Below, piece by piece: positions 1-13,420 of a stretch of 13,420 nt of DNA. The stretch is taken from assembly GCA_013416795.1 (NCBI GenBank), contig RQSC01000757.1, forward strand, positions 1 to 13,420, given 5' to 3'. This DNA is from Prasinococcaceae sp. CCMP 1430. Lineage: Eukaryota; Plantae; Prasinodermophyta. The translations under genes were made by a program, and so were the position numbers. The first letter of the stretch is position 1, and every line of letters starts with the position of its first letter. A model generated the notes under the pieces. The model was not told where the DNA came from, ran no database searches, and was given only the letters and a program-made list of their open reading frames with translations.

Positions 1-67
1 CGCGCCGCGCGCGCCGCCCCCGCCCCCGCTTCGCGCTTCGCCGCCCAAATTACGGCCGAAATGTTTT

Positions 68-770
68 CCCGCGAAGTACATCAAAGTCTATGAACTCCCG
101 AGATGATTTCATAGACTTTGACCTAAAACGCTTGATATAAAAAGTCTATGAAACATGCGGTTCGACCCATCGAATGTCTTGGGGGGCTGAGCAGAGGTCA
201 AAGCCCAGGCTGGGCGCCCCCGCCGAAACTTCGCGGTTCACGCTAAATCTGCACTCGAAATATCTCCCCGCGAAGTACATCAAAGTCTATGAACTCCCGC
301 GAGGATGTCATAGACTTTGAACTAAAACGCCTGATATAAAAAGTCTATGAAACACGCGGTTGGGCCCGTCGAAATGCGGGAAGGCCCCACGGGCGCGCGC
401 CCGCCGCCCTCGTCAAAACGCACGCGCGCGGGGCGCCGTTCCCGCTTCGCAGAATAAAATATTATCTAAAATATGTGCCGTAATCCATATCAAAGTCTAT
501 GAACTCCCGCGAGGATTTCATGGACTTTGACCTAAAACGCTTGATGTAAAAAGTCTATGAAACACGCGGAAGGGACGCGCGAAAAGCTGCGCCCCCCCCG
601 CGCACGAAAATCGAGGGCAAAACGCACGCGAGCATTTCGCGCTTGGCTTGAAAAAGTTCAATCAAAATGTGTTCCCGCGAAATATATCAAAGTCTATGAA
701 CTCCCGAGATGATTTCATAGACTTTGACCTAAAACGCTTGATGTAAAAAGTCTATGAAACACGCGGTTCG
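68..770. repeat. Four-copy tandem array (periods 199, 210 and 197 bp) with a conserved ~90-bp core containing TCAAAGTCTATGAA / TTCATAGACTTTGA / AAAGTCTATGAA and diverged linkers
   Basis: Forward motif at 81-94, 280-293, 490-503 and 687-700. Its reverse complement at 108-121, 307-320, 517-530 and 714-727 (single mismatches in copies 2 and 3). A third, forward 12-mer at 141-152, 340-351, 550-561 and 747-758. Linkers between cores share only short patches. Confidence 0.95.
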
Positions 771-814
771 GACCGTCGAAATTTCGGGAGCCCCGGCGCG
801 CCGCAATTTGCTGG

Positions 815-1041
815 AAACCCTTCCGGGCGCCCGACCAAACCCAAAGTGGCGCGCGCGCGCGCGCGCCCGCGCGCGCGCGGGCGGGGGGGGGCTCCGAAAC
901 CCTGAAGTCGTTGACCCAAATCTGACCAACCCAAAATGGGGCGCGCGCGCGCGCGCGCTCGGCGGGGGACTAACCCTTTTTCTTTTTAACCCTTACGCGA
1001 CCAACCCAAAGGTGCCCCCGGGCGCGCCAGATGGTAACCCT
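815..1041. repeat. Second degenerate repeat: about three units of GACCAA(A)CCCAAA - GC-rich/(CG)n - AACCCT
   Basis: GACCAAACCCAAA at 833, GACCAACCCAAA at 924 and 999. (A/T)AACCCT at 815, 897, 971, 987 and 1035. (CG)n tracts at ~849-879 and ~941-958. Confidence 0.65.
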
Positions 1042-1385
1042 GTAGGCTTCGACCCCAAGGTCCTCACTAGGCGCGTAGGGAAGCCCGGCGGGAAGGACGG
1101 CCGCTGCGCGGCGGCGGCCGAGCGCGCGGAGCGCACTCGTTCGCGCGCAGCCAGAGCGCGCTCCTCCTCCCGCTTAGCTCGATCCTCCTCCATCGCCTTT
1201 TCGGCGATGGAGGAGTAGAGGCTCTCCGAGGCCTCGGCCATCATGGCCGCGGCCTCGGCGGACGAGCTTGTGGCGGCCATCCGTGCCACCAGATCTGGCA
1301 AGGAGGGGGCGATCTGCCCAAGGCCATCACGGAGTGAATCCGTCATGCCCTTGAGGATCAGATCCTCCTCCTCCGTGCCAGGCAT
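993..1385 (-). CDS. Hypothetical 130-aa protein, helical/coiled-coil middle (EKAMEEDRAKREEERALAARER), no recognisable family; 3' end uncertain
   Basis: ATG in a GCCACC-ATG context, preceded by a C/A-rich leader like that of the FG-GAP genes. Codons mostly GC3-rich and natural-looking for the first ~100 aa. The last ~25 codons overlap the 815-1041 repeat, and a GTGAG donor-like site sits at 1067 (minus strand). Confidence 0.55.
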   Translation of the reverse strand: MPGTEEEDLILKGMTDSLRDGLGQIAPSLPDLVARMAATSSSAEAAAMMAEASESLYSSIAEKAMEEDRAKREEERALAARERVRSARSAAAAQRPSFPPGFPTRLVRTLGSKPTGLPSGAPGGTFGLVA

Positions 1386-1697
1386 GGTGGCGCGGATGGG
1401 GGCGTTGGGGGCGGGGGTGTTATGCTGCGGGCACGCGCCCGCGCGCGCGCGCGCGTGGGCGCGTCACAGCGCGCGCGGGGAGGGGGTTGTGGGAGCGCCC
1501 CCGTTCGCGGCGCCCTCGCGGGGAAAGGGGGGCGGTGGTGGCGGGGAAGCGCGCGCGAGCGGGAGGGGCAGGGGTGTGTGGGGGGTGGAGCGCGGAGAGA
1601 AGCTCGCGCGCGTGCTTGCGCTCGCTCGCTCGCTCGCTCGCGCGCGGTCGCGGTCTCGCCCGCGCGGTCGACGTGCCGGCGGCGCGTCGGAGTCCGC

Positions 1698-1739
1698 NNN
1701 NNNNNNNNNNNNNNNNNNNNNNNNNNNNNNNNNNNNNNN
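1698..1739. other. Assembly gap (42 N)
   Basis: Run of N bases; contiguity across it is not sequence-supported. Confidence 1.
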
Positions 1740-1857
1740 CCGCGACAGTCGCAGCCGACGCGCGGCGCGCTTTCAGGAGGAGTGGGGTCGCTGTTCCGCG
1801 GCGGGGGTGGGGGGAGGCGAACGTGCGCGCGCATCCACGCGGGGCGCGCGTGCGAGG

Positions 1858-2045
1858 CACCCGCCTGCGCAGCCTTCGCTCGCCAGCAGCGCGCGCGCGC
1901 TCCCCGCTCGCAGGCGCACCGTGCCTCCTCGTTGGACGGCGCCGTCATGCTGGTGGTTGTATTTTTGGATCGCAGCCCCGCCCGCAGCGCGCGCGCGCTC
2001 CCCGCACGCAACGTTGCACGCCGGTGGCCGCTGACGCTCGACGCT
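1858..2045 (+). promoter_or_regulatory. Conserved non-coding block upstream of FG-GAP gene A (paralogue of 8066-8254)
   Basis: About 190 nt aligns to 8066-8254 at roughly 85% identity by eye. It contains the palindrome GACGGCGCCGTC (1935-1946), an internal repeat GCGCGCGCTCCCCGC and CTGAC at 2031. Confidence 0.7.
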
Positions 2046-2091
2046 TTCCCCGCGACATCTAGCTTCCCACCAACAGCAGCTGGCTCTCAAC

Positions 2092-3581
2092 ATGTCGCCC
2101 CCTCGTCGACCCAGCGTCGCGCTGCTGGCGGCGATGCTGGGGACATCGGCGGTGCGTATGACGCATGCAACCCTCATGGAGGAGGTGTCCAAGCTGCTGG
2201 CCAGCGACGGCGCGGAGCGTGACACTTTCGGCTTAAGCGTGGCGCTCTCGGGCGACTACGCGCTGGTGGGCGCTCCAGATGATGACGACGACGGCGGCGA
2301 CTATGACTATGCTGACGGCGACGATAGCGGCAGCGCGTACGGCGACTACGCGCTGGTGGGCGCTCCAGATGATGACGACGACGGCGGCGACTATGACTAT
2401 GCTGACGGCGACGATAGCGGCAGCGCGTACGTGTTTGTGCGGTCGGGGACGTCGTGGTCGCAGCAGGCCAAGCTGGTGGCCAGCGACGGCGCGGCAAATG
2501 ACAACTTCGGCTACAGCGTGGCACTCTCGGGCGACCACGCGCTGGTGGGCGCTCCAGATGATGACGACGGCGGCGCCTCCAGCGGCAGCGCGTACGTGTT
2601 CGTTCGGTCGGGGACGTCGTGGTCGCAGCAGGCCAAGCTGGTGGCCAGCGACGCCGCGGCGGGTGACGCCTTCGGCTGGAGCGTGGCGCTCTCGGGCGAC
2701 CACGCGCTGGTGGGCGCTCTATATGACGACGACGGCGGCTCCTACAGCGGCAGCGCGTACGTGTTCGTGCGTTCGGGGACGTCGTGGTCGCAGCAAGACA
2801 AGCTTGTGGCCGACGACGCCGCAGCAAATGACTACTTCGGCGTCAGCGTGGCGCTCTCGGGCGACTACGCGCTGGTGGGCGCTTTTGCGGATGACGACAA
2901 CGGCGCCTCCAGCGGCAGCGCGTACGTGTTCGTGCGGAATGGGACGTCGTGGTCGCAGCAGGCCAAGCTGGTGGCCAGCGACGGCGCTGCGTATGACCTT
3001 TTCGGCTACAGCGTGGCGCTCTCGGGCGAATACGCGCTGGTTGGCGCGGATTTCGACGACGACGACGGCTCCGACAGCGGCAGCGCGTACGTGTTCGTTC
3101 GGTCGGGGACGTCGTGGTCGCAGCAGGCGAAGCTCGTGGCCAGCGACGCCGCGATGGGTGATTCGTTCGGCTTCAGCGTGGCGCTCTCGGGCGACCACGC
3201 GCTGGTGGGCGCTGTATATGACGTCGACGGCGGCTCCGCCGGCGGCAGCGCGTACGTGTTCGTGCGTTCGGGCACGTCGTGGTCGCAGCAGGCCAAGCTG
3301 GTGGCCAGCGACGCCGCGGCGGGTGACCGCTTCGGCTACAGCGTGGCGCTCTCGGGCGACTACGCGCTGGTGGGCGCTTTATTTGATGACGACAACGGCG
3401 ACGATAGCGGCAGCGCGTACGTCTTTGATCTGACCGCATCGAGCCCGCCTCCCAGCCCGCCTCCGAGCCCGCCTCCGACCCCGCCTCCGACCCCGCCTCC
3501 GCCGACCCCGCCTCCGACCCCGCCTCCGAGCCCGCCTCCAACCCTTCCTCCTCCGAGTCCTCCTTCGAGTCCTCCGCCGAA
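2092..3581 (+). CDS. FG-GAP repeat (integrin-alpha-like) 7-blade beta-propeller surface protein, segment A: signal peptide + 7 repeats + start of a Ser/Thr-Pro stalk; breaks frame at ~3581
   Basis: N-terminus MSPPRRPSVALLAAMLGTSAVRMTHA is signal-peptide-like. Seven ~55-aa repeats [32 protein letters not shown] ending VFDLT at 3435, then (S/T)PPP repeats. The correct product is not the 568-aa ORF, whose tail is out of frame. Confidence 0.88.
2251..2430 (+). repeat. Perfect in-frame 90-bp tandem duplication within blade 1 of segment A
   Basis: 2251-2340 is identical to 2341-2430 ([30 protein letters not shown] x2). Confidence 0.97.
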
Positions 3582-6500
3582 AGCGGCAGCGCGTACGTGT
3601 TCGTGCGGTCGGGGACGTCGTGGTCGCAGCAGGCCAAGCTGGTTGCCAGCGACGCCGCGGCGGATGCTAGCTTCGGCTGGAGCGTGGCGCTCTCGGGCGA
3701 CTACGCGCTGGTTGGCGCGTTTTGGAACGACGGCAACCCTGTCACCTCGTACGTCTTCGTGCGTTCGGGGACGTCGTGGTCGCAGCAGGCCCAGCTGATG
3801 GCCGACGACGGCGCGTACGATGACCGCTTCGGCTACAGCGTGGCGCTCTCGGGCGACTACGCGCTGGTGGGCGCTCCTCACGACGACGACAGTGGCGTCA
3901 ACAGCGGCAGCGCGTACGTGTTCGTGCGCAATGGGACGTCGTGGTCGCAGCAGGCCAAGCTGGTGGCCAGCGATGGCGTGGCGTATGACGAATTCGGCTA
4001 CAAGGCGGCGCTCTCCGGCGACTACGCGCTGGTTGGCGCCCCTTTTGACGGCGACGACAGCGGCAGCGCGTACGTCTTCTTTCGCTCGGGGACGTCGTGG
4101 TCGCAGCAGGCCAAGCTGGTGGCCGGCGACGCCGCGATGGGTGACTCGTTCGGCTCCGGCGTGGCGCTCTCGGGCGACTACGCGCTGGTGGGCGCTGTAT
4201 ATGACGGCGACGGCGGGGACAAGAGCGGCAGCGCGTACGTGTTCGTGCGGTCGGGGACGTCGTGGTCGCAGCAAGCCAAGCTGGTGGCAAGCGACGGCGC
4301 GGCGGATGACTACTTCGGCCTCAGCGTGGCGCTCTCGGGCGACTACGCGCTGGTTGGCTCTTATTTTGACGACAACGACGGCGGCGACGATAGCGGCAGC
4401 GCGTACGTCTTTGATCTGACCCCCTCGAGCCCGCCTCCGAGCCCGCCTCCGAGCCCGCCGCCGAGCCCGCCGCCGAGCCAGGTCAAGCTTCTGCCCAGCA
4501 ACGCCACGGATTCTGGCAACTTCGGCGTCAGCGTGGCGCTCTCGGGCGACTACGCGCTGGTGGGCGCTCATGGGGACGGCGACAACGGCTTCATGAGTGG
4601 CAGCGCGTACGTCTTTTTTCGGTCGGGGACGTCGTGGTCGCAGCAGGCCAAGCTGGTGGCCAGCGACGGCGCGGCGGACGCCAACTTCGGCTGGAGCGTG
4701 GCGCTCTCTGGCGACTACGCGCTGGTGGGCGCTTATGGGGACGGCAACAACGGCTCCTACAGCGGCAGCGCGTACGTGTTCTTGCGCAATGGGACGTCGT
4801 GGTCGCAGCAGGCCAAGCTGGTGGCCAGCGACGGTGTGGAGTATGACAACTTCGGCTCGAGCGTGGCGCTCTCGGGCGACTATGCTCTGGTTGGCGTGCC
4901 TTACGACGGCGACGTCGGCGACGACAGGAACGGCAGCGCGTGCGTCTTTTTTCGGTCGGGGACGTCGTGGTCGCAGCAGGCCAAGCTTGTGGCAAGCGAC
5001 GGCGCGGACAATGACTACTTCGGCTACAGCGTGGCGCTCTCGGGCGACTACGCGCTGGTGGGCGCTCCTGATGACGACGACAGCGGCTTCAACAGCGGAA
5101 GCGCGTACGTTTTCGTTCGCAATGGGACGTCGTGGTTGCAGCAGGCCAAGCTGGTGGCCAGCGACGCCGCGGACAATGACAACTTCGGCTACAGCGTGGC
5201 GCTCTCGGGCGACTACGCGCTGGTGGGCGCTCCTGATGACAACGATAGCGGCTTCAACAGCGGAAGCGCGTACGTGTTCTTGCGCTCGGGAACGTTGTGG
5301 TCGCAGCAGGCCAAGCTGGTGGCCAGCGACGGCGCGGAGTTTGGTGGCTTTGGAACCAGCGTGGCACTCTCGGGCGACTACGCGCTGGTGGGCGTTCCTT
5401 ACGACGCCGTCGGCGGCGACGACAGCGGAAGCGCGTACCTGTTCGCGCGGTCGGGGGCGTCGTGGTCGCAGCAGTCCAAGCTGGTGGCCAGCGATGGTGC
5501 GGAGTATGACAACTTCGGCTACAGCGTGGCGCTCTCCGGCGACTATGCGCTGGTGGGCGCTCATTATGACGACAACGACAGCGGCGTCGATAGCGGCAGC
5601 GCGTACGTCTTTGATCTGACCCCCTCGAGCCCGCCTCCGAGCCCGCCGCCGAGTCCCCCTCCGAGTCCTCTGCCGAGCCAGGTCAAGCTGCTGGCCAGCG
5701 ACGCCACGGACGCTGACAACTTCGGCGTCAGCGTGGCGCTCTCGGGCGACTACGCGCTGGTGGGCTTGCCTTACGACGGCGACGTCGGCGACGACAGGAA
5801 CGGCAGCGCGTGCGTCTTTTTTCGGTCGGGGACGTCGTGGTCGCAGCAGGCCAAGCTTGTGGCAAGCGACGGCGCGGACAATGACTACTTCGGCTACAGC
5901 GTGGCGCTCTCGGGCGACTACGCGCTGGTTGGCGCTCCTGATGACAACGACAGCGGCTTCAACAGCGGCAGCGCGTACGTTTTCGTGCGCTCGGGGACCT
6001 CGTGGTTGCAGCAGTCCAAGCTGGTGGCCAGCGACGCCGCGGCGGGTGACAACTTCGGCTACAGCGTGGCCCTCTCGGCCGACTACGCGCTGGTGGGCGC
6101 TCCTTTTGACGCCGATGGCGGCTCCGCCAGCGGCAGCGCGTACGTGTTCGTGCGGAATGGGACGTCGTGGTCGCAGCAGGCCAAGCTGGTGGCCAGCGAC
6201 GGCGCTGCGTATGACCGTTTCGGCTACAGCGTGGCGCTCTCGGGCGAATACGCGCTGGTTGGCGCCCCTGATGACGACGACAGCGGCTTCAACAGCGGCA
6301 GCGCGTACCTCTTCGTGCGCTCGGGGACTTCGTGGTTGCAGCAGTCCAAGCTGGTGGCCAGCGACGCCGCGGCGGGTGACAACTTCGGCTACAGCGTGGC
6401 CCTCTCGGCCGACTACGCGCTGGTGGGCGCTCCTTTTGACGCCGATGGCGGCTCCGCCAGCGGCAGCGCGTACGTGTTCGTGCGGAATGGGACGTCGTGG

Positions 6501-7625
6501 TCGCAGCAGGCCAAGCTGGTAGCCGACGACGGCGCTGCGTATGACCTTTTCGGCCGCAGCGTGGCGCTCTCGCGCGACTACGCGCTGGTGGGCGCTTATG
6601 GGGACGACGACAATGGCTCCAACAGTGGCAGCGCGTACGTTTTCGTTCGCAATGGGACGTCGTGGTCGCAGCAGTCCAAGCTGCTGGCCAGCGACGGCGC
6701 CGCGGACGACAACTTCGGCTACAGCGTGGCGCTCTCTGGCGACTACGCGCTGGTGGGCGCTCATTATGACGACAACGACAGCGGCGTCGATAGCGGCAGC
6801 GCGTACGTCTTTGATCTGACCCCCTCGAGCCCGCCTCCGAGCCCGCCTCCGAGTCTCCCTCCGAGCCCTCCGCCAAGCCCTGAGCCGAGCCCGCCTCCGA
6901 GTCTACCGCCGAGCCCTCCTCCGAGCCCGCCGCCTCCGAGCCCTCCTCCGAGCCCTCCTCCGAGCCCTCCGCCGAAGCCTCCGCCGAAGCCTCCGCCGAG
7001 CCCGCCTCCGAGCCCTCCTCCGAGCCCTCCGCCGAACCCGCCTCCGAGCCCACCTCCTCCGAGCCCTCCACCGAGCCCTCCGCCGGGCCTTCCGCCGAAT
7101 CCTCCTCCGAGCCCACCTCCGAGCCCGCCTTCGAGCCCACCTCCTCCGAGCCCACCTCCGAGCCCGCCTTCGAGCCCACCTCCTCCGAGCCCACCTCCGA
7201 GCCCGCCTTCGAGCCCACCTCCTCCGAGCCCACCTCCGAGCCCGCCTTCGAGCCCACCTCCTGCGAGCCCACCTCCGAGCCCGCCTCCGAGCCCACCTCC
7301 TCCGAGCCCTCCTCCGAGCCCGCCTCCGAGCCCTCCTCCTCCGATCCCACCTTCGGGTTCGCCTTCGAGCCCTTCTCCTCCTCATCCTCCTCCTAGCCCG
7401 CCTCCTTTGAGCCCGCCTCCTCGGAGCCGACCACCACCACCACCTCCTCCGAGCCCGCCTCAGAGGACTTCCGCGCCTCCCCGCGCCGGCGCCATCGCCG
7501 CCGGCAGCGTCGCCGCCGCCGCCGCGGTGGCCGCCGCCCTCTTCCTGCGGTTGCGCAGCAGGAGGCCGAAGGATGGTGGCCTCACCGACGGGACGACTCC
7601 CTCCTCTTCCGCCAACCGCGTGTGA
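3582..7625 (+). CDS. FG-GAP multi-propeller type-I membrane protein, segment B: partial propeller (5 full blades + remnant), two 7-blade propellers, Ser-Pro stalk, TM helix, short cytoplasmic tail; own N-terminus absent
   Basis: Frame +3 starts mid-blade (SGSAYVF at 3582). Modules ~3582-4421, ~4476-5621 and ~5676-6821 each end in VFDLT, with SPPP linkers. Stalk 6822-~7463, Ala-rich hydrophobic segment [19 protein letters not shown] at 7491-7547 followed by basic RLRSRRPK, stop TGA at 7623-7625. Confidence 0.9.
6822..7463 (+). repeat. Extensin-like (Ser-Pro3-4)n coding minisatellite (stalk)
   Basis: Repeated CCGAGCCC(G/A/T)CCT units encoding SPPP/SPPPP with PPK, PPN and PPG variants. Confidence 0.95.
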
Positions 7626-7692
7626 CGGCCACCAACACTGGCGCGTCCCCTCTCCCTCGCTTTGCGGACCTCCCGCTCCCCGCGAGCGCGGC

Positions 7693-7740
7693 GGAAAGGG
7701 AAAGGGAAAGGGAAAATGAAACGGAAATGGAAATGGAAAT
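7693..7740. repeat. GGAAA(G/T) hexamer microsatellite downstream of the segment B stop codon
   Basis: GGAAAGGGAAAGGGAAAGGGAAAATGAAACGGAAATGGAAATGGAAAT. Confidence 0.8.
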
Positions 7741-8065
7741 CCCCCCTAACGAATACTGTAGCAATCCCCCTTTTTATTGCCCACACAGACACAGATCAGA
7801 ACAGATCGCATCGACTTCAAATCCGAACCCATCAATGAACAAGAGACCGACACCACGCGTTTTATGAGTTGGGCGCACCTCTCTCTCGCGCCGGCCGGCC
7901 GGCCAAAAGGTCGGTTGGTCGATTGACGGCCTCCGTCGCGCGCTCGGCCCTGGCTGGCGCCCCCGTCCTCCCTGTGGGGGAGGGGGGCGCCGGGGCGCGC
8001 GCGCGGGGCGGGGCGCCCGAGTTCTCGCGCGGCGAGGGGTCGAACGCGCGCGGGGCAGCGCGGGC

Positions 8066-8254
8066 CACCCGCGTGCGCGGCCTTGGCTCGTCAGCAGCGC
8101 GCGCGCGCTCCCCGCACGCAGGCGCACCGCGCCTCCACGTGGGACGGTGCCGTCATGCGAGTGGTTGCATGTTGGGATCGCAGCCCGGCGCCCGCGGTGC
8201 GCGTGCGCTCCCCGCACGCAAGGTTGCGCGCGCTCCCCGCTGACGCTCGACGCT
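8066..8254 (+). promoter_or_regulatory. Conserved non-coding block upstream of FG-GAP gene C (paralogue of 1858-2045)
   Basis: Aligns with 1858-2045; GACGGTGCCGTC at 8143-8154, CTGAC at 8240, CAG at 8271-8273. Confidence 0.7.
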
Positions 8255-8327
8255 CACCCGACGACAACAACAGCTCCTCCCTCCCCCAAAACAACAACAA
8301 AACACCCCCCATCCAACCCCAACAACA

Positions 8328-10335
8328 ATGCCGACCCCTCGTCGCTTGCTTGCATGGGCTGCGATGCTGGCGACCATGGTGGTTGGTACAACGCATGCGA
8401 CCTCGGAGGAGGACTTCCAGCTGCTGGCCAGCGACGCCGCGGACGATGACAACTTCGGCTACGGCGTGGCGCTCTCGGGCGACTACGCGCTGGTGGGCGC
8501 TCCGAATGACGACGACGGCGGCGACAACAGCGGCAGCGCGTACGTGTTCTTGCGCAATGGGACGTCGTGGTCGCAGCAGGCCAAGCTGGTGGCCAGCGAC
8601 GCCGATTCGTATGACAGCTTCGGCGAGCGCGTGGCGCTCTCGGGCGACTACGCGCTGGTGGGCGCCCATGGGGACGACGACAGCGGCCAAGGACGCCGAC
8701 CGCGGCACCGACAGCGGCAGCGCGTACGTGTTCTTGCGGTCGGGGACGTCGTGGTCGCAGCAGGCCAAGCTGTTGGCCAGCGACGCCGCGGCAAATGACT
8801 ACTTCGGCGACAGCGTGGCGCTCTCGGGCGACTACGCGCTGGTGGGCGCTGATTATGACAACAACGACAACGGCTCCAACAGCGGCAGCGCGTACGTGTT
8901 TTTTCGCTCGGGGACGTCGTGGTCGCAGCAGGCCAAGCTTGTGGCAAGCGACGGCGCGGAGGGTGACTTGTTCGGCGGGAGCGTGGCGCTCTCGGGCGAC
9001 TACGCGCTGGTGGGCGCTCCTTATAACGACAACGATCGCGGCAGCGCGTGCGTGTTTTTGCGGTCGGGGACGTCGTGGTCGCAGCAGGCCAAGCTGGTGG
9101 CCGGCGACGCCGCGGAGGGCGACCTCTTTGGTTCCAGCGTGGCACTCTCGGGGGAATACGCTTTGGTGGGCGCTTACTGGAACGACGGCGGCGGCTCCGA
9201 CAGCGGCAGCGCGTACGTGTTCGTGCGCGATGGGACGTCGTGGTCGCAGCAGTCCAAGCTGGTGGCCAGCGACGGCGCGGAGTTTGACAGTTTTGGCGGG
9301 AGCGTGGCGCTCTCCGACGACTACGCGCTGGTGGGCGCTTATGGGGACGGCGTCAACGGCTACCTCAGCGGTAGCGCGTACGTTTTCGTTCGCAATGGGA
9401 CGTCTTGGTCGCAGCAGTCCAAGCTGGTGGCCAGCGACGGCGCGGAGAATGACCGCTTCGGCTGGAGCGCGGCGCTCTCGGGCGACAACGCGCTGGTGGG
9501 CGCTTATGCGAACGGCGACAATGGCTCCAACAGTGGCAGCGCGTACGTCTTCGTTCGCAATGGGACGTCGTGGTCGCAGCAGTCCAAGCTGTTGGCCAGC
9601 GACGGCGCGGAGTATGACAACTTCGGCACAAGCGTGGCGCTCTCGCGCGACTACGCGCTGGTGAGCGCTGCTTATGACGACGATAGCGGCTCCAACAGCG
9701 GAAGCGCGTACCTGTTCGCGCGGTCGGGGGCGTCGTGGTCGCAGCAGTCGAAGCTGGTGGCCAGCGACGGCGCGGAGTTTGACAATTTTGGCTACAGCGT
9801 GGCGCTCTCCGACGACTACGCGCTGGTGGGCGCTCATTATGACGACAACGACAGCGGCGACGATAGCGGCAGCGCGTATGTCTTTGATCTGACCCCCTCG
9901 AGCCCGCCTCCGAGCCCGCCTCCGAGTCTCCCTCCGAGCCCTCCGCCAAGCCCTGAGCCGAGCCCGCCTCCGAGTCTACCGCCGAGCCCTCCTCCGAGCC
10001 CGCCGCCTCCGAGCCCTCCTCCGAGCCCTCCTCCGAGCCCTCCGCCGAAGCCTCCGCCGAAGCCTCCGCCGAGCCCGCCTCCGAGCCCTCCTCCGAGCCC
10101 TCCGCCGAACCCGCCTCCGAGCCCACCTCCTCCGAGCCCTCCACCGAGCCCTCCGCCGGGCCTTCCGCCGAATCCTCCTCCGAGCCCACCTCCGAGCCCG
10201 CCTTCGAGCCCACCTCCTCCGAGCCCACCCCCGAGCCCGCCTTCGAGCCCACCTCCTCCGAGCCCACCTCCGAGCCCGCCTTCGAGCCCACCTCCTCCGA
10301 GCCCACCTCCGAGCCCGCCTTCGAGCCCACCTCCT
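8328..10335 (+). CDS. FG-GAP propeller surface protein, gene C: signal peptide + 9 repeats + Ser-Pro stalk; +1 frameshift at ~8686-8691, 3' end lost at the N (possible pseudogene or sequencing error)
   Basis: [24 protein letters not shown] is homologous to the gene A signal peptide. Blades 1-2 are in frame +3, the rest in frame +1 after GGCCAAG (one extra base). VFDLT at 9880-9894; stalk to 10335. Confidence 0.85.
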
Positions 10336-10336
10336 N
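10336..10336. other. Single-N scaffold join
   Basis: One N joins the truncated stalk of gene C to the truncated kinase on the opposite strand. Confidence 0.95.
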
Positions 10337-11340
10337 TTGTGCAGCAGGCAATCCTCGATCAGCTGGACGACGCCCGTCGGCGCCGACCTGCGCATCTCGG
10401 CGCTGATGGTCGGGCGCAGCTTGGTCTCGTCCGAGCGCACCTCGAGCAGGATGTCGCGCGTACTCTTGCCCTTGTGGTCAGCGTACGGCACATCGCGCGC
10501 GAAGCACTCCCAGCACAGCATGCCGAGGCCGTACACGTCGGACGCCTCGCTGTTGGACTCGCCCGCCAGCAGCTCGGGCGCCATCCAGAACGGCGTCCCC
10601 ACCGCAGAGCGCCGGCCAGCGCCCAGCATGCGGCCTTTCGTCGATGAGAGGCCGAAGTCGGACAGCTTGCAGTCAAAGCTGTCGTTCACGAGCACGTTGG
10701 CGGCTTTGATATCGCCTGTGGGCGCGTGCGCAGGGTGCGAGAGGGGCGAGGGGAGGCAATACAAGAGCACACGGGAGGGACGCGCAGCGTCAGCGAAGGT
10801 GCCAGTAGTCATAGTAGCAAACAGATGCCAGGGACCTTTCCCCCGTGCAGGCGGCGACGCAGCGCGTAGCATCTTTTCTCTTTCTTGCACGCACCGTGTA
10901 TGATGGGCTCCTTGCCGCTGTGCAGGTAGCGCATGCCGCACACGACGTCGCGCACCATGCCGATGAGCAGCGAGGCGGGCAGGTCGGCCGTCGGGTTGAG
11001 CAGAAGGTCCCGCAGCGTTCCCCTGGGCATGTACTCAAGAACGAGCAGCGGGTCGGCCTCCTTGGTGGCTCCAAGCACGGTGACGATGTTCGGATGACGG
11101 AGGCGCACCATGAGGCGAATCTCGCGTTTGAAGATGTTGGCCAGCCGCGCGCTCGACAGCCGCTTGCCGGCGCCCGTGCCTGATGCTGCTGTCCCGCCGC
11201 ATCCGAGTCCCAGATTGCCTGACTGGCTGCCCGTGCCGCTCCCAATCGAGAGGCAACCAAGCGAGACGCACGAGCCGAAGTGGGCCCGCTTCACGCAACC
11301 GATGTCACCGCCACTGCGACTGCCAACACTGCCACTGCCG
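10337..11340 (-). CDS. Partial Ser/Thr (TKL-like) protein kinase, non-RD (HGDIKAAN); exons ~11340-10895 and 10715-10337; both ends truncated
   Basis: Spliced translation gives FKREIRLMVRLRHPNIVTVLG...LLVLEYMPRGTL...GMRYLH...IIHG|DIKAANVLV...KLSDFGLS...GTPFWMAPELL...SDVYGLGMLCWE. The C-terminus is cut at the N. No clear Gly-loop/VAVK; the upstream part is a Gly/Ser-rich stretch, so the 5' boundary is approximate. Confidence 0.88.
10716..10894 (-). other. 179-nt spliceosomal GT-AG intron in the kinase gene (phase 1)
   Basis: Donor CACG|GTGCGT at 10894 and acceptor CACAG|GC at 10716. Splicing joins H-G-D-I-K in frame and restores the catalytic loop. Confidence 0.9.
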
Positions 11341-13420
11341 CTGCCCGGTCCGCCCGGTCCGCCCGGCCTGCCTCCGCCCGCCCGGCCCCCGCCCCAGCAG
11401 CAGCCCCAGCAGCAGCACTTTCAGCAGCAGCAGCAGCAGCAGCAGCAGCTGTACCAACAGCCCCCGGCGGCGGCCGCGGCGGCGCGGCGCCCGCCCCCGG
11501 GCCCGTCCGCCGCGCAGCAGCAGCAGCAGCAGCCGCACTTTCAGCAGCAACAGCAGCAGCAGCAGCAGCACCGACCCCCTCCCTCCCCGACGACGACGGC
11601 CCTCCCCCCGCCGCAGCAGCAACCGCCCCCGCCCCCGACGACGGCCGCCCCCCTCCAAGCTGCTCGGCAGCACCAAACCCCCTCCCCGACGGCCCTCCAG
11701 GCCCGCCCCAAGCCCGGCACCACCGTCGCCTTCCAGCTCCTGCGGCGCAACGTGTACCCCCACCGGCGCACGAAGCGCGTCTCCGACGACGACATCATGG
11801 TGTGCGCGTGCGACCCGCGCGACGGCTGCGGCGCCGACTGCATCAACCGCCAGCTGCAGATCGAGTGCACGCCGGGCTACTGCCCCTGCGGCGATGGCTG
11901 CCGCAACATGGCCTTCCAGCGGCGCTCGTACGCGCCGCTGCGCAACGTCGCGGTGGGGCGCAAGGGCTTCGGGCTGGTGTGCGACCGCGCCCTCGCCAAG
12001 GGCGACTTCGTGATCGAGTACACCGGCGAGGTGCTCGACCAGAAGAGCTTCGCCGCGCGCAAGGAGCGCTACGGCGAGGAGGGCCAGCGCCACTACTACT
12101 TCATGACCCTCTCGAACACCGAGACCATCGACGCGCACCGCAAGGGCAACCTGGGGCGCTTCCTCAACCACTCCTGCGAGCCCAACTGCCGGCCCGAGAA
12201 GTGGCAGGTCCGCGGCGAGCTGTGCATCGGCATCTTCGCCTCGCGCGACATCCCCGCGGGCGAGGAGCTCACGTTCGACTACCAGATGGAACGCTTCGAC
12301 AAGGCGCAGCCGTGCTTCTGCGGGGCGCCCTCGTGTGGCGGCGTCATGGGCGGCACCAACATCGACCACGCCGAGGCGAAGGAGCTGCTCGAGCAGATCG
12401 CCGCCGACGACCCAGAGGAGGGCTTCGACGAGCCCGAGTACCGCTTCGTCGACCCCGTCGACGCGGGCGACGGCGTCGACCCCGACGCGGCGCCGTTGCC
12501 ACCGCGCGGCGCCGCCGGCGGCCGCCCGCCGCGGCGCAAGCACCGCTCGGAGCGCTCGCTCGTCGCCGAGCGCAAGCTCGTGGGGCGCCTCAAGGCGAGC
12601 CGCAACATCGTCGACGCGCTCTCGATGGTCGAGCAGGAGCTGCAGCCCATCACCACCAAGAGCCTCAAGCTGCGGAGGCCCGAGTGCGCGGTGGAGTACC
12701 TGCGCCTCTTCAAGGAGGCCACCAGCGGCAACGCGGGGCAGGCGGCGGGCGGCGGGGCGCCCGGCGCCGCGCTGGCGGCGGCCTCGCCCTCCGCGGCGGC
12801 CGCCGCGACGAGCTACTCGTCGCGCGACCTGAGCATCCTGCTGGAGGTGATGATCAAGACGGACAGCTACGCCGCGCAGACGGCCATGCTCAAGGCCGGC
12901 GCGCCGGGCCTGCTGCTGGGCGTGTGCCTCAAGCTGGCCGGCGACAGGCAGCAGCAGGCGTGCGTGCGCAAGGCGCTGCGAGGGCTGCTCGCGCTGCCGC
13001 TCACCAAGGCGCACATGGGCGCGGTGCGCGTGGGGATGGTCACCCTGGTGGACGCCGTGAGGCGCATGGCCAGCGAGCGCAAGCCGCTCGACGCCGAGGT
13101 CCGCAAGTACGCCGACGAGCTGGCGTACAAGTTCTTTCCGCGCCCGGTGGCGCCCAGGCCCGCGCCGGCGCCGGCGGCCCAGCAGCAGGGCGGCCAGCCG
13201 GGGCAGCAGCCGGGGCAGCTCGGCGCGCCGCAGGCGCAGGAGCAAGGTCAGAACGGCCACCAGCAGCAGCACCAGCAGCAGCACCAGCAGCAGCAGCACC
13301 AGCAGCAGCAGCAGCAATGGGGCGGGGCTGGAGCGGCGGACGCGCCGCTGACGGGTCACAAGCGGCCGCGCGAGGACGCCGCCGAGGCCGCGGGCTCCGC
13401 CGCCGCCGCCGCCGCGGCCG
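11341..13420 (+). CDS. SET2: Histone-lysine N-methyltransferase, Set2/ASHH2 (H3K36) type: P/Q-rich N-terminus, AWS-SET-postSET, helical domain, polyQ; runs off the window (not in the ORF track)
   Basis: Frame +1 is open from 11098 to the window end. Cys-rich AWS at 11803-11925, KGFGL, IEYTGEV, RFLNHSCEPN (12157-12186), ELTFDY (12265-12282), post-SET CFCGAPSC (12313-12336). Very high GC3 from 11341. Start uncertain (in-frame ATG at 11302). Confidence 0.92.
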   Translation, partial: MPGPPGPPGLPPPARPPPQQQPQQQHFQQQQQQQQQLYQQPPAAAAAARRPPPGPSAAQQQQQQPHFQQQQQQQQQHRPPPSPTTTALPPPQQQPPPPPTTAAPLQAARQHQTPSPTALQARPKPGTTVAFQLLRRNVYPHRRTKRVSDDDIMVCACDPRDGCGADCINRQLQIECTPGYCPCGDGCRNMAFQRRSYAPLRNVAVGRKGFGLVCDRALAKGDFVIEYTGEVLDQKSFAARKERYGEEGQRHYYFMTLSNTETIDAHRKGNLGRFLNHSCEPNCRPEKWQVRGELCIGIFASRDIPAGEELTFDYQMERFDKAQPCFCGAPSCGGVMGGTNIDHAEAKELLEQIAADDPEEGFDEPEYRFVDPVDAGDGVDPDAAPLPPRGAAGGRPPRRKHRSERSLVAERKLVGRLKASRNIVDALSMVEQELQPITTKSLKLRRPECAVEYLRLFKEATSGNAGQAAGGGAPGAALAAASPSAAAAATSYSSRDLSILLEVMIKTDSYAAQTAMLKAGAPGLLLGVCLKLAGDRQQQACVRKALRGLLALPLTKAHMGAVRVGMVTLVDAVRRMASERKPLDAEVRKYADELAYKFFPRPVAPRPAPAPAAQQQGGQPGQQPGQLGAPQAQEQGQNGHQQQHQQQHQQQQHQQQQQQWGGAGAADAPLTGHKRPREDAAEAAGSAAAAAAA
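11395..11570 (+). repeat. CAG/polyglutamine tracts in the SET protein N-terminus
   Basis: Two related QQQ(P/Q)HFQQQQQ blocks, at ~11395-11460 and ~11515-11570. Confidence 0.9.
13258..13317 (+). repeat. (CAC/CAG)n His-Gln tract in the SET protein
   Basis: HQQQHQQQHQQQQHQQQQQQ. Confidence 0.9.

Follow-up and report, generated by a model that had tools for sequence, protein, structure and literature searches.

A long array of FG-GAP repeats in the alga Prasinococcaceae sp. CCMP 1430 raises the question of whether this organism displays variable surface receptors comparable to antibodies or to the variable lymphocyte receptors (VLRs) of lampreys, as an initial annotation of the DNA had proposed. 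The window, by which we mean the whole stretch of 13,420 nucleotides analyzed here (assembly GCA_013416795.1, contig RQSC01000757.1, positions 1 to 13,420, forward strand), has a GC content of about 68%, and between 2092 and 10335 its plus strand carries 35 copies of a unit of about 55 codons with the core FG..[VA]ALS. The best explanation of the whole, to which we give a probability of roughly 0.6, is a constant-framework array of PF14312 propellers with a loop-diversified binding face, a family-wide trait that is carried here on a eukaryote-type anchor.

The count of 35 blades given at the outset proved exact, and Pfam assigns every one of them to PF14312 (FG-GAP_2). Taken in three pieces, the array scored 470, 1187, and 476 bits (E values of 2e-144, 0, and 3e-146, with 7, 19, and 7 matched stretches) against a curated gathering score of 23 bits, and Tandem Repeats Finder (TRF) returned array periods of 165/330/495 nt. 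The blades are indeed modular, but the five modules described earlier lie in two tandem, interrupted genes, gene 1 having 7/5/7/7 blades and gene 2 having 9. Translation establishes the locus as two tandem genes for predicted type-I surface proteins, composed of a signal peptide, one to four integrin-alpha-like seven-bladed PF14312 propellers, and Ser-Pro linkers.

When 34 blades were aligned by codon, conservation reached 90 to 100% in most columns of the framework. High per-column entropy was found in the two windows to which the variation had been ascribed, at columns 9, 11, 12, 14, and 17 around D-x-FG-x (the 4-1 loop) and at columns 31, 32, 35, 46, 48, and 49 after LVGA and before SGSAYVF (the 2-3 loop). 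The loop peptides are nearly all distinct (33 of 35 for the 4-1 loop and 30 of 34 for the 2-3 loop). What varies in the Asp-rich loop is the two residues before and the two or three after its D-D-D-x-G core; the core itself is conserved, so the loop is only in part the variable element it had been taken for. The framework also turned out less uniform than the "almost invariant at DNA level" of the initial annotation, with a mean nucleotide identity of 86% (range 71 to 100%), compared with 64 to 68% in the loops, and a proportion of synonymous differences (pS) between window blades of 0.17 to 0.26 (about 0.22). At the protein level, the mean pairwise identity of the 23 blades of canonical length was 0.73. 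The choice of codon depends on the column (columns 21, 30, and 53, for instance, use CTC, GCT, and GCG). Rather than codon bias alone, this indicates that the blades descend from a single ancestral blade or are still undergoing conversion.

The residues at the variable sites are far from random. Tyr (18%), Asn (15%), Asp (14%), Ser (11%), and Gly (10%) are the most used, and compared with random-codon expectation, the aromatic residues Y/W/F/H make up 28% instead of 7% and D/N 29% instead of 5%, in keeping with the binding-surface residues that had been proposed. Homologues outside the window show a similar usage at these sites (aromatics 23.5%, D/N 23.4%). Such nonrandom composition in both the window and its homologues suggests that the sites are functional and not drifting. 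We also observed that the variable codons (columns 12, 14, 17, 31, 32, 46, 48, and 49) have a GC content at third positions (GC3) of 0.62, with 35% ending in T, versus 0.90 in the rest of the blades; codon selection may be weaker at nonconserved sites, the mutations may be young, or GC-biased gene conversion may affect chiefly the homologous framework. Adenine mutagenesis of the kind made by diversity-generating retroelements was considered as well, as the variable codons are mostly NNC/NNT, and rejected: neither a template repeat nor a reverse transcriptase occurs in the window, and bacteria share the residue usage.

Does selection drive these positions apart, or are the loops simply free to change? 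By pairwise Nei-Gojobori comparison, the ratio of nonsynonymous to synonymous rates (dN/dS, or omega) was 0.31 to 0.43 in the framework, 1.1 to 1.2 in the 4-1 loop, and 0.87 to 1.02 in the 2-3 loop, rising to 1.65 to 2.0 for eleven columns chosen post hoc; a parsimony count placed dN at eight sites at 2 to 3.2 times the global dS. We then compared the codon site models M1a and M2a in our own implementation, which differs from codeml and uses a fixed FastTree topology with a single synonymous rate. M2a was favored over M1a with a likelihood ratio test (LRT) statistic of 76.1 (p = 3e-17), assigning 11% of sites to a class with omega2 of 4.0, and the posterior was at least 0.99 at columns 12, 14, 17, 31, 32, and 48, while the framework had an omega of about 0.12 to 0.15. 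Restricting the data to the 23 internal, nonduplicate blades gave an LRT of 69.4 and added column 49 (posterior above 0.95). Codon-frequency misfit was rejected as the source of the signal, because F61 frequencies (LRT 69.6) agree with F3x4 (76.1). Recombination was likewise rejected at the level tested: among 12 null simulations under M1a, including eight mosaic ones with three blocks of independent genealogies, the LRT never exceeded 5.7.

On the other side, site-wise dN/dS, the test suggested for this locus at the outset, returned a divided answer, with an omega class of about 4 (LRT 69 to 76) next to whole-loop values of about 1 (0.87 to 1.19) and nonsignificant within-site tests. Synonymous changes are raised at the variable codons too, and in the within-site binomial test only column 48 reached p = 0.005, uncorrected, with nothing significant after correction. 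From these two observations omega is possibly inflated, and rate heterogeneity or a depressed framework dS (GC3 of 0.90, codon bias, and biased gene conversion) could be the cause. All of this would suit an account by structural constraint only, in which the loops are free, the framework is held by the fold, and the blades were recently amplified, with no selection for diversity and no recognition role; the recurrence of the same pattern throughout the family would suit it equally. We nevertheless consider this account unlikely, because simulations with neutral loops stayed at an LRT of 5.7 or below and because the use of Y/N/D/S/G at the variable sites departs widely from what mutation in a 68% GC genome would yield, which argues that these sites are not free to drift.

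The preferred reading, a diversified binding face, also depends on where the loops lie. An AlphaFold2 model of module 3 (4479 to 5621), built with a 48-sequence alignment, was predicted with a pLDDT (predicted local distance difference test) of 95.4 and a predicted template modeling score (pTM) of 0.94, as seven blades of four strands each (28 strands). In the model, the 1-2 and 3-4 hairpins have two residues, and the 2-3 and 4-1 loops have about 10. The top 50 Foldseek matches are all integrin alpha heads, with template modeling scores of 0.70 to 0.76, and a second structural search, all against representatives, gave Z scores of 38 to 42 for integrins versus about 30 for generic WD40 propellers. 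An antiparallel blade of four strands has its 2-3 and 4-1 loops on one face, and it is on this upper face that integrins bind their ligands. It therefore holds, by propeller topology in an integrin-like model, that the two variable windows share one face, as the initial annotation had argued for the FG (4-1) and GAP (2-3) loops. In our view, there is good in silico support for a constant scaffold, borne on a stalk, with a variable face that probably binds ligand. The other face of the propeller, away from the variable loops, has an N-G-T glycosylation sequon that comes and goes with an S/N alternation at column 59 (R-[S/N]-G-T-S-W) in the 3-4 hairpin; seven such sequons occur in each of modules 3 and 4 and one in module 1.

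Being the best structural match (18 to 22% identity), the integrin alpha head deserves a closer comparison. The FG and GAP motifs stand on the same strands, and integrin alpha is likewise a type-I membrane protein with a short tail. However, the Ca-binding DxDxDGxxD 1-2 hairpins that integrins have in their C-terminal blades are absent here: the 1-2 hairpin is a two-residue turn (S-G-D) in every blade, and the acidic loop is the 2-3 loop. No thigh or calf (Integrin_alpha2) domains were found, FG-GAP_2 being the sole Pfam assignment and the propellers giving way to a Ser-Pro stalk, and the GFFKR motif is missing from the 25-residue tail. Moreover, the propellers, unlike those of integrins, are in tandem and the stalk is proline rich, and nothing points to a beta subunit. 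Lacking the Ca-binding 1-2 hairpins, the leg domains, and GFFKR, the locus does not encode an integrin alpha subunit.

Is this design an invention of the alga? A word-index protein search retrieved at least thousands of bacterial and metagenomic PF14312 proteins with 50 to 65% identity over the whole seven-blade module; in two word searches, nearly all of at least 8000 scored candidates each were significant, and many of the homologues are multi-propeller proteins. Their consensus is the framework of the window, with undetermined residues exactly at the window's variable positions, and the entropy profiles of the window blades and of 373 homologue blades are correlated (r = 0.80, Spearman 0.72). 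Blade identity within a protein has a median of 0.67 (range 0.53 to 0.84) among the homologues versus 0.73 in the window, and the framework pS between blades of two bacterial genes (0.15 and 0.27) falls in the same range as here. In each of three multi-propeller proteins from bacteria, a framework particular to the protein is nearly invariant and the loops vary at the places found in the window; the site test on these three gave LRTs of 13.3, 23.6, and 23.9 and omega2 of 3.7 to 3.9, at the same positions. Among viral sequences, 436 IMG/VR contigs encode seven-blade PF14312 propellers with 44 to 52% identity to module 3. One of them (L056) carries the label of a giant-virus metagenome-assembled genome, and FG-GAP genes have been mentioned in a Mantoniella prasinovirus and in the virion of a haptophyte virus (PMC11467894, PMC11953307).

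Bacterial, archaeal, and viral PF14312 proteins thus have in common with the alga the framework consensus, the variable positions, the between-blade pS, the sites with omega above 1, and the multi-propeller arrays. The difference lies in what the propellers are joined to: in bacteria, PKD, Ig-like, Calx-beta, cadherin, TSP3, or type IX secretion system (T9SS) sorting domains, and here, an extensin-like Ser-Pro stalk, a single transmembrane helix, and a short tail. As for genomic context, neighbors of bacterial PF14312 genes include an RHS/YD-repeat protein (contig L085, 5607 to 6389) and CsgG/LpoB-like and cohesin-domain genes (contig L001, 952 to 2947), which fits a cell-surface setting. A sequence search and the literature (PMC8078820) yielded no PF14312 member with a solved structure, and no experimentally tested function for PF14312 was found in the literature. 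Because bacterial members share both the design and the selection signal, we consider these a property of the PF14312 family and not an adaptive-immune-like invention specific to the alga.

The antibody- or VLR-like repertoire originally proposed for the alga is therefore not supported. The likeness to lamprey VLRs and antibodies consists of a constant scaffold with variable residues on one surface and of variable positions rich in Tyr, Asn, Asp, Ser, and Gly. In those systems, however, dedicated enzymes assemble the receptors somatically from cassettes or segments, whereas the arrays here are complete in the germline; neither cassette architecture nor somatic-assembly machinery was seen in the window, nothing indicates that kind of assembly, and all the diversity observed is germline encoded.

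How, then, does such an array change? A diagonal self-comparison scan located near-identical tracts between 2909-3047 in module 1 and 6127-6265 in module 4 (99.3%), between 4897-5116 in module 3 and 5767-5986 in module 4 (98.6%), between 5889-6190 and 6219-6520 (98%), an internal two-blade duplication in module 4, and between 6740-7262 in gene 1 and 9813-10335 in gene 2 (99.4%). Identical 2-3 loops are found paired with differing 4-1 loops, that is, as recombinant loop pairings. We propose that the array would change through duplication of blades and segments, unequal crossing-over, and gene conversion, leaving tracts of 98 to 99% identity between modules and genes. Purifying selection would meanwhile hold the four-strand framework at its omega of about 0.12 to 0.15, and six to eight positions of the 4-1 and 2-3 loops may outpace synonymous sites (omega of about 4) on the same face, around the conserved D-D-D-x-G core. 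Each propeller would then most likely present seven related but nonidentical acidic pockets that a rigid stalk keeps well away from the membrane, and our best guess for the ligand is a repetitive one such as a glycan, possibly together with a cation.

Two bodies of earlier work bear on this mode of evolution. Highly repetitive propellers, defined by a median blade identity above 60%, arise by continuous amplification of single blades, have off-median blade numbers, and are often disrupted by frameshifts, and a possible link to immunity or self-recognition has been raised (Pereira & Lupas 2022, PMC9218822). The locus matches them in blade identity (0.73), in blade numbers of 5, 7, and 9, in the internal reamplification of blades, and in the disruption of frame. 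In that survey, however, the highly repetitive FG-GAP/alpha-integrin forms were reported from archaea and bacteria only, and no site-wise selection was reported for the family, whereas the present gene is of eukaryote type. The second body of work concerns the WD40 repeats of fungal NWD/HET-D/HET-E proteins, which evolve in concert both within a gene and across genes (Paoletti et al. 2007, PMC1805685; Chevanne et al. 2010, PMC2873952) and in which a handful of codons per repeat is under positive diversifying selection on the interaction face (PMC1805685). Their exchange of repeats is matched here by the tracts of 98 to 99.4% identity (modules 1/4 and 3/4, genes 1/2), and their few selected codons are matched by columns 12, 14, 17, 31, 32, and 48 (and 49), on a face assigned by topology. 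On the other hand, the NWD/HET proteins have a WD40 fold and are cytoplasmic STAND/NLR proteins (signal-transducing ATPases with numerous domains, NOD-like receptors), and repeat-induced point mutation (RIP) adds to their mutation supply; their recognition and repeat-number polymorphism were shown experimentally, whereas for the present locus both are hypothetical. By analogy, this fungal repertoire appears to be the closest precedent for a constant scaffold with a selected variable face.

The fungal precedent invites a stronger reading, namely, that the alga possesses a true repertoire: a large, fast-evolving germline family of surface receptors for viruses, bacteria, prey, or mates, with turnover of blades from strain to strain, as an extracellular counterpart of NWD/HET. 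We compared public reads, as fragmented Logan contigs of DNA runs in which alleles are not separable from paralogues, with the locus. In each run, 602 to 7641 Logan contigs match a 6-kb stretch at 95% identity or higher, and many contig joints pass from framework to framework with different loop letters between; together these indicate many paralogous blades genome-wide. Twenty DNA runs under two organism labels contain 54 to 79% of the sampled 31-mers, and 21 to 46% are thus absent from other runs, although the unique intergene DNA at 7542 to 8349 is identical in four runs; given the fragmentation, the absent 31-mers could represent strain differences in the arrays or errors in the assembly of the window. 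Positions with omega above 1 on one face, mosaic tracts common to both genes, and display on a stalk with a short tail would also accord with a repertoire. Yet scans of JGI metagenomes for alleles, by the tail peptide and by an exact 26-nt string, found no match, and the fact that secreted proteins of bacteria bear an identical signature speaks for a generic binding module (a lectin or an adhesin, for example). We regard a true repertoire as improbable on present evidence, and give similarly little credit to its fuller form, in which hundreds of PF14312 blades over many loci would have a homogenized scaffold, six to eight upper-face positions driven apart, and blades that are shuffled and strain variable.

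The reading that we prefer, a PF14312 array with a diversified face on a eukaryote-type anchor, draws its anchor from the layout of the two genes, all of whose features are on the plus strand. In gene 1, the start codon and a predicted signal peptide (MSPPRRPSVALLAAMLGTSAVRMTHA) occupy 2092 to 2169, the latter assigned from the hydrophobicity of the translated N terminus. Module 1 follows at 2170 to 3435 with seven FG-GAP_2 blades (FG at 2227 to 3331; TRF, Pfam, and core motif), and then, in translation, Ser/Thr-Pro linker 1 at 3436 to 3581, which ends in a frame-breaking junction near 3580. Module 2 (3582 to 4421) has one leading strand and only five blades (FG at 3672 to 4314), in the frame of the open reading frame (ORF) 3597 to 7625. 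Module 3, with the seven blades modeled above, and module 4, at 5679 to 6821 with seven blades, were delimited by the core motif, and 19-residue SPPP linkers join modules 2, 3, and 4. The initial annotation had described a Ser-Pro stalk, a membrane anchor, and a tail of about 25 residues, and translation finds all three in gene 1: an extensin-like (SPPP)n stalk of 221 residues, of which 149 are Pro and 51 Ser (6822 to 7484), followed at 7485 to 7625 by an Ala-rich transmembrane helix (7485 to 7547), a cytoplasmic tail of 25 residues with a basic start, and the stop codon. Per propeller, 46 to 71 acidic residues stand against 14 to 17 basic ones.

Gene 2 repeats this plan in part. Its start codon and predicted signal peptide, similar in translation to those of gene 1, lie at 8328 to 8399, and module 5 at 8400 to 9894 has nine blades by the core motif (FG at 8454, 8619, and 8803 to 9787). 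Its stalk, at 9895 to 10335, falls within the 99.4% tract shared with gene 1 and is cut by an N at 10336; after it, the assembly contains no transmembrane helix or tail, and by blastn the DNA past 10336 is unrelated to the tail of gene 1. The 5' flank of gene 1 (1838 to 2045) is 85% identical by blastn to that of gene 2 (8049 to 8254), which indicates a tandem gene duplication that took in the upstream region. A head-on-shaft arrangement of this kind has a parallel in the sexual agglutinins of Chlamydomonas, algal hydroxyproline-rich glycoproteins whose globular binding head is held out from the cell surface by a long (SP)n shaft of polyproline type. To our knowledge, agglutinin heads are not FG-GAP propellers, and the likeness is one of described design only; hydroxylation or glycosylation of the present stalk is hypothetical.

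Both genes are interrupted as assembled. Near 3580, linker 1 abuts a mid-blade SGSAYVF in another reading frame, and an intron across this break was rejected, as the available GT..AG pairs (3593 to 3629/3632) would span 37 to 40 nt and do not restore the blade frame. The frame of gene 2 changes at about 8685 to 8691, in a 2-3 loop with 19 nt more than its counterparts, where the repeat spacing is 184 and not 165. In gene 1, 90 bp of blade 1 are duplicated exactly and in tandem (2251 to 2340 = 2341 to 2430). This duplication is in frame and would insert one strand and one loop more; either slippage of very recent date or the assembly itself would have produced it. Assembly gaps flank the locus at 1698 to 1739 and at 10336. 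In the public reads, 3580 is precisely where one Logan contig of run X3 stops, and run X5 joins linker 1 in another way, to the proper start of a module (3575>5672); the junction near 3580 is accordingly provisional.

These features raise the possibility of a decaying or misassembled locus, with pseudogenized or collapsed chimeric repeats, in which the blade order and part of the diversity would be artifactual. Beside the two frame breaks, the exact duplication, the N runs, the alternative joint, and the modules of 5 and 9 blades, it would account for the finding that any public run has only 54 to 79% of the sampled 31-mers while about 800 bp of unique intergene DNA is the same in four of them, and frameshift-disrupted repetitive propellers are common (PMC9218822). 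But the framework omega of 0.12 to 0.15 argues for recent purifying selection, a single 4-kb frame (3597 to 7625) is open through modules 2 to 4, the stalk, the transmembrane helix, and the tail to the stop codon, and no indel relative to the window was reported in the aligned Logan contigs. We therefore hold decay or misassembly to be possible but doubtful, and it bears on the integrity of these two copies, not on the nature of the family.

Several points weigh against the reading of a diversified binding face, beginning with the codon-level results given above: the whole-loop dN/dS, the raised synonymous changes, the potential inflation of omega, and a site model that is our own code on one fixed topology, with 12 null simulations in all. 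The assignment of the variable loops to one face comes from DSSP strand order, propeller topology, and analogy with integrins, rather than from coordinates. Ligand and cation binding are pure inference, and the D-D-D-x-G core does not match the canonical DxDxDG. None of the public RNA runs searched contains 31-mers of the locus. Finally, with breaks near 3580 and 8688 and the gap at 10336, the 5- and 9-blade modules could be products of misassembly or decay.

Apart from the array, an antisense ORF of 1134 residues (3360 to 6764, minus strand) crosses the repeats, and several long ORFs occur on both strands; such antisense frames are expected in a 68% GC repeat and are not evidence of a gene. 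The flanking ORFs at 754 to 1218, 1243 to 2034, 11183 to 12013, and 11305 to 13359 (minus strand) have no Pfam match. The last of these, of 684 residues, contains long CAG/GCA trinucleotide runs, with repeats at 11395 to 11570 and 13261 to 13316.

For the biology of these proteins, an adaptive-immune-like system does not follow from the pattern alone, and the more exciting claim is deflated. What the analysis adds is an extension to a eukaryote of the highly repetitive propeller phenomenon of the FG-GAP lineage, for which the 2022 survey (PMC9218822) had archaea and bacteria only, within PF14312, a very large family with no solved structure or tested function found. The columns with omega above 1 provide concrete residues for mutation, and the stalk-anchored eukaryotic version is testable for binding of a virus, a bacterium, a mate, or a glycan. 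If the stronger repertoire reading were true, the locus would represent an extracellular counterpart, in a eukaryotic microbe, of fungal NWD/HET recognition, directed against viruses or bacteria or serving in mating, and the same logic would apply to the bacterial members. As it stands, a signature found in an alga and in three unrelated bacterial proteins, consisting of a scaffold and about seven positions with omega above 1 on what is probably one face, points to a general evolvable binding module.

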